Source: Octopus bimaculoides | Taxonomy: Eukaryota | Assembly: GCF_001194135.2 (NCBI RefSeq) | Contig: NC_068989.1 | Location: 57,879,840 to 57,943,839 of the forward strand | Reading direction: 5' to 3' | Length of the DNA: 64,000 nucleotides | Part shown: piece after piece, positions 42,466-42,527 of the stretch | Numbering within the stretch: the first letter of the stretch is position 1 | Layout: every line of letters starts with the position of its first letter | Program-made: the position numbers and the translations under genes | The notes under the pieces: generated by a model | Database searches by the model: none | Told to the model about the DNA's origin: nothing | What the model saw: the letters and a program-made list of their open reading frames with translations, nothing else

Positions 42466-42527
42466 CATTAGATAGTGCTCGCTGAAGCTCAAAACCAGTG
42501 ATATCGCCACTGCGGTTGGTGTCAATC
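42466..42527 (-). CDS. PDCD6: PDCD6 alternative (putative mutually exclusive) exon 2b: [22 protein letters not shown]
   Basis: Polypyrimidine acceptor ctcctcctccctactgtcttctcag, donor G|gtaagc. Exactly 62 bp, same phases as 2a, no stops, canonical EF-hand loop D-x-N-x-S-G-x-I-T-x-x-E. Not in the ORF track. Confidence 0.85.

Follow-up and report, generated by a model that had tools for sequence, protein, structure and literature searches.

A tandem pair of homologous EF1 exons in the octopus gene PDCD6 (ALG-2), each carried by one of two annotated isoforms

Tandem duplication of an exon can give rise to mutually exclusive exons, a class termed homologous exon substitution and catalogued for human genes (PMC9741552), in which the copies are ancient, of equal length and phase, furnished with their own splice sites and present one per mRNA. 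The pair of exons described here, in the octopus gene PDCD6, is likewise ancient, recognisably homologous, equal in length and phase and equipped with separate splice sites; its two annotated isoforms contain one exon each and are identical outside this segment. It is an ordinary member of this class of tandem-duplicated, mutually exclusive homologous exons. Compared with the human catalogue (PMC9741552) it is an invertebrate instance, in a gene that the catalogue does not mention, and there is no difference in kind. Its closest functional analogues are the EF-hand exon pairs of ACTN1 and ACTN4, followed by other Ca2+-tuning pairs such as exons 4a/4b of OGDH. In ACTN1/ACTN4, as at our locus, tandem-duplicated exons swap part of an EF-hand in a Ca2+-binding protein; there, however, just one version keeps Ca2+ binding (cited in PMC9741552), whereas both PDCD6 versions keep acceptable ligands and neither has lost them. 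OGDH exons 4a and 4b yield Ca2+-insensitive and Ca2+-sensitive isoforms, and their exclusivity is imposed through a limit on intron length set by distant branch points (PMC7969005). The octopus and OGDH exons are alike in forming a mutually exclusive pair that bears, in octopus probably, on Ca2+ responsiveness, but the protein families are unrelated and the octopus 2a–2b intron is 13 kb long. Mammalian ALG-2 also has a natural splice isoform of its own, deltaGF122. This form, which is without Gly121-Phe122, has lost ALIX binding and kept Sec31A binding (PMC4346919). It resembles the octopus case in being an alternative form of the same protein, and what it changes is partner selectivity; unlike the octopus case, it is a two-residue deletion on the Pocket 2 side, between EF3 and EF4, made through an alternative splice site, with no exon swap and no part for EF1.

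The octopus locus lies on O. bimaculoides chromosome CM046609.1, on the minus strand of the window (the whole 64-kb stretch of DNA that was analysed), which matches that chromosome with 100% identity. A tblastn search of the window with human ALG-2 placed PDCD6 exons 2 to 6 on this strand, and the exact exon boundaries were taken by reading the sequence (Table 1). When compared with PDB sequences, the protein matched human and mouse ALG-2 over residues 8-175 with E = 2e-73, sorcin with 1e-39 and grancalcin with 8e-35. Judged by this full-length similarity, which is stronger than that to other penta-EF-hand proteins, the gene is PDCD6 (ALG-2). Exons 2a and 2b are adjacent to one another on the same strand, both between exon 1 and exon 3, and the interval from exon 2a to exon 3 that holds 2b measures 23,835 nt. 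Exon 1 itself is outside the window, ~7.9 kb past position 64000, which explains why the earlier reading of this DNA found none. It ends ...CAG AA/gtaagt (slashes mark exon–intron boundaries), so that the codon split across the junction is AAA or AAG and specifies Lys in both isoforms. In each copy of exon 2 the first base is the last of this split Lys codon, and the last base is the first of a split Gly codon. A leading Arg had earlier been assigned to both peptides; it came from translating the intronic 'ag' and is replaced by this Lys. A search of the window found neither a third copy of exon 2 nor duplicates of exons 3 to 6. Duplicates of PDCD6 exons 3 to 6 occur in other phyla.

Table 1. 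PDCD6 features in the window, listed in the direction of transcription (window coordinate = 74894 - L001 coordinate)
Feature	Position	Strand	Length	Details
Conserved island around 2a	55436..55600	-		31 nt upstream + 72 nt downstream; 87% over 173 nt; L001 19294-19458 vs L004 8938-9110
Exon 2a	55569..55508	-	62 nt	ag/.../gtgagt; encodes (K)VDRDQSGQISSKELQDALSN(G), EF1 of isoform X1 (XP_014773297.1)
Intron 2a-2b	42528..55507	-	12,980 nt	
Conserved island around 2b	42437..42643	-		116 nt upstream + 29 nt downstream; 78% over 208 nt vs Argonauta; L001 32251-32457 vs L004 17692-17887
Exon 2b acceptor side	42528..42560	-		Polypyrimidine tract ctcctcctccctactgtcttctcag then AG; tract + AG kept in 4/4 octopod genomes
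Exon 2b	42466..42527	-	62 nt	Sequence read; exact match to XP_014773298.1
Exon 2b donor G/gtaagc	42460..42465	-		Identical in O. vulgaris, O. sinensis and Argonauta
Intron 2b-3	31673..42465	-	10,793 nt	
Exon 3	31628..31672	-	45 nt	TWTPFNPETVRLMV; common to both isoforms
Exon 4	30449..30607	-	159 nt	EF2-EF3
Exon 5	29839..29948	-	110 nt	EF4
Exon 6, coding part	27042..27143	-	102 nt	EF5 + stop codon

Read on the minus strand from 42527 to 42466, exon 2b and its borders run ...ctgtcttctcag/GATTGACACCAACCGCAGTGGCGATATCACTGGTTTTGAGCTTCAGCGAGCACTATCTAATG/gtaagc, and its two ends are cag/GATTGACACC...CTATCTAATG/gtaagc. In the phase of exon 2a it is open over its whole length, with no stop codon. The encoded peptide, (K) plus 20 residues plus (G), comprises the EF1 Ca2+-binding loop and the exiting helix, and is equivalent to human ALG-2 residues 34-55. 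The first-pass annotation had described a 62-bp exon with the same phases as 2a, a strong polypyrimidine acceptor and a G/gtaagc donor, and all of these were reproduced from the sequence; the pyrimidine-rich tract 5' of the exon is 25 nt long. Its count of three CpGs in CpG-poor surroundings was also recovered: exon 2b has 3 and exon 2a has 0, and the observed/expected ratio of CpG over the surrounding 2 kb is 0.29.

The same annotation had called the exon hidden, with an implied claim of novelty, and this did not survive a look at the public databases. RefSeq already lists two products for O. bimaculoides, XP_014773297.1 (X1, with exon 2a) and XP_014773298.1 (X2, with the exact peptide of exon 2b), an outcome that had been named beforehand as one that would leave the feature standing but take away its novelty. 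A pair of this kind is also present in O. sinensis (XP_029641530.1/XP_029641531.1) and O. vulgaris (CAI9728515.1/CAI9728516.1), and in the three octopus species both isoforms are 177 aa long and differ in EF1 only. In X2, exon 2b sits between the exon 1 and the exon 3 that are also found in X1, exons 3-6 being common to both, and in-silico splicing of the exons in the window reproduces X1 as well as X2. The octopus X2 is a computed RefSeq model; to our knowledge, RefSeq issues alternative models of this sort only where transcripts back them. These results confirm that exon 2b is a real second copy of PDCD6 exon 2, used instead of 2a to give a second isoform, and they refute the claim that the pair was new, since it is known from annotation. 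In the literature searched, which covered penta-EF-hand proteins, the accessions of the isoforms and mutually exclusive exons in cephalopods, we found no paper describing the PDCD6/ALG-2 exon pair. With the exon and both isoforms already public for this genome, the feature itself is a rediscovery, and one which shows that criteria drawn from sequence alone work.

In O. vulgaris, O. sinensis and Argonauta hians, exon 2b is likewise a 62-nt exon bounded by AG and GTAAGC and placed between 2a and 3. Its absence or a broken frame in related octopuses had been named as grounds for giving up the exon, and in these three other octopod genomes it is intact. Between O. bimaculoides and Argonauta two of its residues have changed and three codons differ by synonymous substitution only, giving dN = 0.098, dS = 0.434 and dN/dS ~0.23, a value in line with purifying selection. 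Over the Octopus–Argonauta comparison exon 2a shows 0 amino-acid changes, versus the 2 in exon 2b. When the region from exon 1 to exon 3 was compared between O. bimaculoides and Argonauta, five orthologous blocks aligned, namely exon 1, a block in intron 1, 2a with its flanks, 2b with its flanks, and exon 3; the other matches in the region are dispersed repeats. On this alignment, exon 2b stands out as an island of constraint inside an otherwise diverged intron.

The pair is not confined to octopods. Three further genomes were checked directly, those of the chiton Liolophura, the periwinkle Littorina and the bryozoan Watersipora, with exon copies labelled by genomic order only. Each has two 62-nt AG/GT exons, in the same order, between exon 1 and exon 3, so the proposal to inspect other mollusc PDCD6 loci was answered by same-order pairs in a chiton and a gastropod, and also in a bryozoan. 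In 10/10 cross-species comparisons the similarity of upstream to upstream and of downstream to downstream exons exceeded that between positions; octopus 2b, for example, shares 16/20 residues with the downstream exon of Watersipora and 12/20 with the upstream one. Between O. bimaculoides 2b and its chiton, gastropod and bryozoan counterparts 13 to 16 of the 20 residues are kept, with synonymous sites saturated. Annotation extends the list of same-length isoform pairs that differ at EF1 only. It includes gastropods (Littorina, Biomphalaria, Gigantopelta and four Haliotis species), the chiton Liolophura, bivalves (the scallops Mizuhopecten, Pecten and Argopecten, and the unionid Sinanodonta), nemerteans (Tubulanus, and Lineus with three EF1 versions), the bryozoan Watersipora, the brachiopod Lingula and the barnacle Amphibalanus. 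In Amphibalanus the alternative exon corresponds to exons 2 and 3 fused into one, and the orthology of the barnacle pair is therefore uncertain. A search with the N-terminal 70 residues of the 2b isoform returned short fragmentary gene calls of other animals and no octopus 2b peptides. Because the pairs in chiton, periwinkle and bryozoan are orthologous and in the same order, the duplication would predate the mollusc–bryozoan split, and a single duplication before that split is the simplest reading of the sequences. Taken together, annotation, octopod conservation, dN/dS and the cross-phylum pairs bear out the earlier proposal of an old tandem duplication under purifying selection, giving two ALG-2 isoforms that differ only in EF1.

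Among contigs assembled from public sequencing runs were cephalopod-like PDCD6 mRNAs that form one family, with ~80% identity to the octopus protein, lengths of ~1 to 1.3 kb and uninterrupted frames. Most of them carry a 2a-type EF1. Two others, L009 (SRR24189504) and L010 (SRR24189497), have an identical coding sequence in which a 62-nt 2b-type exon is joined directly to exon 1 and exon 3. The exon 1-2b-3 splice form is thus demonstrated in a cephalopod-like relative; for O. bimaculoides itself the evidence is the RefSeq models. A further Logan contig, L008 (SRR16213285), carries spliced octopus-like mRNA in which part of exon 3 is followed by exon 4; the first 200 nt at its 5' end are unrelated sequence, probably through chimeric assembly, and it is uninformative on exon 2. 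Each mRNA, whether the X1 and X2 models or the 2a-type and 2b-type contigs of the relative, has one copy of exon 2. As the first-pass annotation had pointed out, 62 is not a multiple of 3, so that inclusion of both exons or of neither shifts the frame: with both, a stop is met at codon 73, and with neither, at codon 37. The distances from these stops to the last exon junction downstream are 278 and 262 nt, respectively. Only mRNAs with a single exon 2 would be productive, and the frameshifted ones would, judging by the frame, be expected to go by nonsense-mediated decay. These results support the reading of 2a and 2b as mutually exclusive.

Exon 2b is short (20 codons) and just 55% identical to 2a, which might suggest a chance resemblance or a decaying pseudo-exon. 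The two copies agree at 36/62 nucleotides and, as had been counted before and was reproduced here, encode the same residue in 11/20 internal codons; 5 of these 11 codons differ synonymously and the other 6 are identical. In a tblastn comparison within the 50-kb locus, 2a found 2b with E = 8.8e-4. As a control for chance, we collected from the 23,835-nt intron all windows consisting of an AG, 62 nt open in the same phase and a GT. There were 28 of these, and exon 2b scored 11/20 against 2a, whereas the runner-up scored 4/20, so that none of the 27 other candidates exceeded 4/20. Similarly, only three 60-nt windows on both strands of the whole 64-kb window reached at least 8/20 to 2a, these being 2a itself, 2b and one at 9/20. 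Given also that exon 2b is intact in four octopod genomes while the surrounding introns no longer align, and that it is already annotated as coding, we consider this explanation vanishingly unlikely. Another possibility, raised by the first-pass annotation, is that 2b belongs to a separate transcript with a promoter and first exon of its own inside the intron. A non-exhaustive search of the 13-kb 2a–2b intron for non-coding first exons gave it no positive support, and three results count against it. X2 carries the same N-terminus as X1, and this exon-1 N-terminus is shared by every annotated X2 in three octopus species and >10 other animals; exon 2b starts in phase 2 and contains no in-frame ATG; and in the mRNA contigs of the relative the 2b-type exon directly follows the common exon 1. 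A separate transcript is therefore very improbable. It is likewise very unlikely that exon 2b is rarely or non-productively spliced, a minor or regulatory exon whose isoform is without function of its own. The stronger conservation of 2a between Octopus and Argonauta would fit that idea, but the peptide of 2b is kept as a canonical EF-hand loop, and a purely regulatory exon needs no Ca2+ ligands. Moreover, the extent to which its residues are retained at deep distances, despite saturated synonymous sites, is at odds with a dispensable product, as are the full-length 2b-type mRNAs assembled from two runs in the relative.

A different question is how one exon comes to be chosen. Exclusivity could be set at the splicing step, by docking/selector RNA pairings or by tissue-specific splicing factors, and not by frame-dependent decay; we regard this as possible but rather doubtful. 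It would be in keeping with the conservation of flanking sequence in Octopus and Argonauta, which extends over 116 nt upstream of 2b and 72 nt downstream of 2a, and with an AU-rich helix of 15 bp (one bulge) that could form between sequences just upstream of 2a and just downstream of 2b. This helix has a predicted energy of -27.8 kcal/mol, compared with -18.0 +/- 3.4 when the sequences are shuffled (z = -2.9). However, that z is the best of 15 pairings, with simple mononucleotide shuffling as the control. Both exons would be looped out by the helix, unlike in the geometry of known docking-selector systems, and in Argonauta a single mismatch and a single G-C to G-U replacement occur in it without compensation. 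Among the 15 pairings, which covered the flanks of 2a, 2b and 3 and the conserved intron-1 block, none besides this helix exceeded shuffles, and nothing convincing emerged. In Watersipora the two exons are just 52 nt apart, suggesting steric exclusion in that lineage, but the 12,980 nt that separate 2a from 2b rule out such hindrance in octopus.

With these alternatives weighed, we hold with high confidence that exon 2b is a genuine coding exon and the downstream member of an ancient tandem duplicate, and that productive mRNAs contain 2a or 2b and so encode two 177-residue penta-EF-hand proteins differing at nine EF1 residues. Residue n of the octopus protein is equivalent to residue n+15 of human ALG-2, and in human numbering the nine differences are at positions 35, 37, 38, 39, 42, 44, 45, 46 and 50. 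Position 34 is Lys in both versions. The EF1 loop of 2a is DRDQSGQISSKE, that is D-R-D-Q-S-G-Q-I-S-S-K-E. Both versions have acceptable ligands at loop positions 1, 3, 5 and 12, including Glu at 12 (human E47), and the sole change in a Ca2+ ligand is from Asp in 2a to Asn in 2b at loop position 3 (human 38). Pfam EF-hand models match the N-terminal halves of both isoforms. An AlphaFold2 model of X2 (mean pLDDT 80) has a helix at 10-20, a loop and a helix at 30-37, with pLDDT of ~82-84 over EF1. Both EF1 loops are canonical in sequence, and both are predicted to bind Ca2+. This would make tuning more likely than an on/off switch for Ca2+.

The swapped residues correspond to sites that serve human ALG-2 in Ca2+ coordination, membrane binding and the Sec31A pocket, and all of the functional differences considered here are extrapolated from mutagenesis of the human protein. 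The mutation E47A in human ALG-2 abolishes partner binding (PMC4346919). In the human protein, the basic triad of R34, K37 and R39 drives both acidic-membrane binding and recruitment to ER exit sites (PMC10907313), and Pocket 3, which binds the Sec31A motif, is lined by V35, L48, A51, L52, S53 and G55 (PMC4346919). By analogy, the Ca2+ affinity of the two octopus isoforms is likely to differ through Asp versus Asn at loop position 3. Electrostatic membrane binding likely differs as well, at the positions of K37 (Arg in 2a, Thr in 2b) and R39 (Gln in 2a, Arg in 2b), and the edge of Pocket 3 may differ at V35, which is Val in 2a and Ile in 2b. The choice of exon would in this way tune the Ca2+ response of the sensor together with its recruitment to membranes and partners. 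The isoforms thus offer a natural variant pair for asking how EF1 sets the Ca2+ threshold of ALG-2 and its membrane and partner targeting in the ER-exit-site and ESCRT pathways.

Beyond the octopus, the finding that the EF1 pair is ancient and widespread among lophotrochozoans adds, together with the nature of the residues it swaps, context that has apparently gone undescribed. We tentatively propose, as a broader reading that we find somewhat less probable than not, that the EF1 splice switch was already present in the ancestor shared by molluscs, nemerteans, bryozoans and brachiopods (possibly already in that of protostomes, if the barnacle pair is orthologous), that it is without vertebrate annotation, and that its two versions are functionally distinct ALG-2 sensors, the downstream type having lost the middle one of the triad's basic residues and, in the case of octopus and Watersipora, being changed in a Ca2+ ligand too. 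The same proposal would make PDCD6 an unusual hotspot, with exons 2, 4, 5 and 6 each tandemly duplicated in some invertebrate lineage. We did not find an ancient EF1 splice switch or a PDCD6 duplication hotspot described in the literature, and the individual isoforms are present in RefSeq. Across phyla, the downstream exon typically encodes [IV]-D-T-[DN]-R-S-G, in which position 37 is not basic, and the upstream exon V-D-[KR]-D-[RKQ]-S-G.

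The sequence UAAAUUUGUAAUGGU, which lies immediately upstream of exon 2a, is complementary to ACUAUUGCAAUAUUUA, immediately downstream of the exon 2b donor, so that the flanks of the two 62-nt EF1 exons of PDCD6 could pair. The candidate helix comprises 15 bp with one bulge in both O. bimaculoides and O. sinensis, and the Argonauta version carries one mismatch and one change from G-C to G-U; it is AU-rich, and its significance is borderline. Of the intronic blocks between exon 1 and exon 3 that do not adjoin an exon, just one can still be aligned with its Argonauta counterpart, at 69% over 140 nt; it lies in intron 1 of O. 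bimaculoides PDCD6, beyond the window, and could be a regulatory element.

In the bryozoan Watersipora subatra just 52 nt of intron lie between the two EF1 exons, and an intron this short can probably not be removed by splicing. In this lineage steric hindrance, rather than the reading frame, may therefore keep the EF1 exons mutually exclusive. One PDCD6 mRNA contig of octopus-like sequence from Logan (L008, SRR16213285) is correctly spliced from exon 3 onwards; its initial ~200 nt are unrelated sequence and the join falls within exon 3. This contig is probably an assembly chimera that arose where the two exon-2 paths diverge.

Alternative homologous copies were also seen for other PDCD6 exons. 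Exon 5 (EF4, YRLSD...FDDFIQCC) is present in two or three copies in several animals outside octopus, with both copies one after the other in the 'LOW QUALITY' Mya model P0003. For the last coding exon (EF5), four animals each have a choice of two homologous versions; in Lingula, two EF1 versions combined with two last exons give four PDCD6 isoforms. The octopus window contains a single last exon, with no second version found there. In bdelloid rotifer models of 228-250 residues, the exon-4 segment (EF2-EF3, MFD...SFG) occurs twice in tandem. Octopus exon 4 is 159 nt long, a multiple of three, and if the same holds for the rotifer exon, predictors can take both copies in frame. The doubled segment may represent either another alternative pair or a true internal duplication.

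Downstream of PDCD6 we noted two reverse-transcriptase-like reading-frame fragments (FGF.PG[KR].TTDAIF..RQLQEKYL) in opposite orientations and, close to them, copies of a ~340-nt repeat that are ~90% identical. These look like remnants of retrotransposons.

Positions of the features and working labels (P-numbers) of the PDCD6 protein models
Feature	Source	Position or model	Strand
Pairing flanks	window	55570-55600 and 42437-42465	minus
Conserved intron 1 block	O. bimaculoides PDCD6 locus (L001)	4049-4178	
EF1 exons and intron	Watersipora OY755160.1 (L005)	785-960	
Unrelated 5' sequence	L008	1-205	
Two exon 5 copies	three amphioxus (Branchiostoma) species	P0056/P0210, P0209/P0221, P0212/P0213	
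Two exon 5 copies	Mya	P0026/P0250 and P0003	
Three exon 5 copies	Mercenaria (venerid clam)	P0034/P0245/P0246	
Three exon 5 copies	Ruditapes (venerid clam)	P0031/P0247/P0249	
Two EF5 last exons	brittle star Amphiura	P0060/P0222	
Two EF5 last exons	hydrozoan Hydractinia	P0073/P0223	
Two EF5 last exons	nemertean Lineus	P0230/P0228	
Two EF5 last exons	brachiopod Lingula	P0015/P0261	
Doubled exon-4 segment	bdelloid rotifers	P0004-P0007, P0009, P0016, P0048	
Reverse-transcriptase-like fragment	window	5263-5457	plus
Reverse-transcriptase-like fragment	window	13016-13210	minus
~340-nt repeat copies	window	6142-6477, 12101-12439, about 37180-37516
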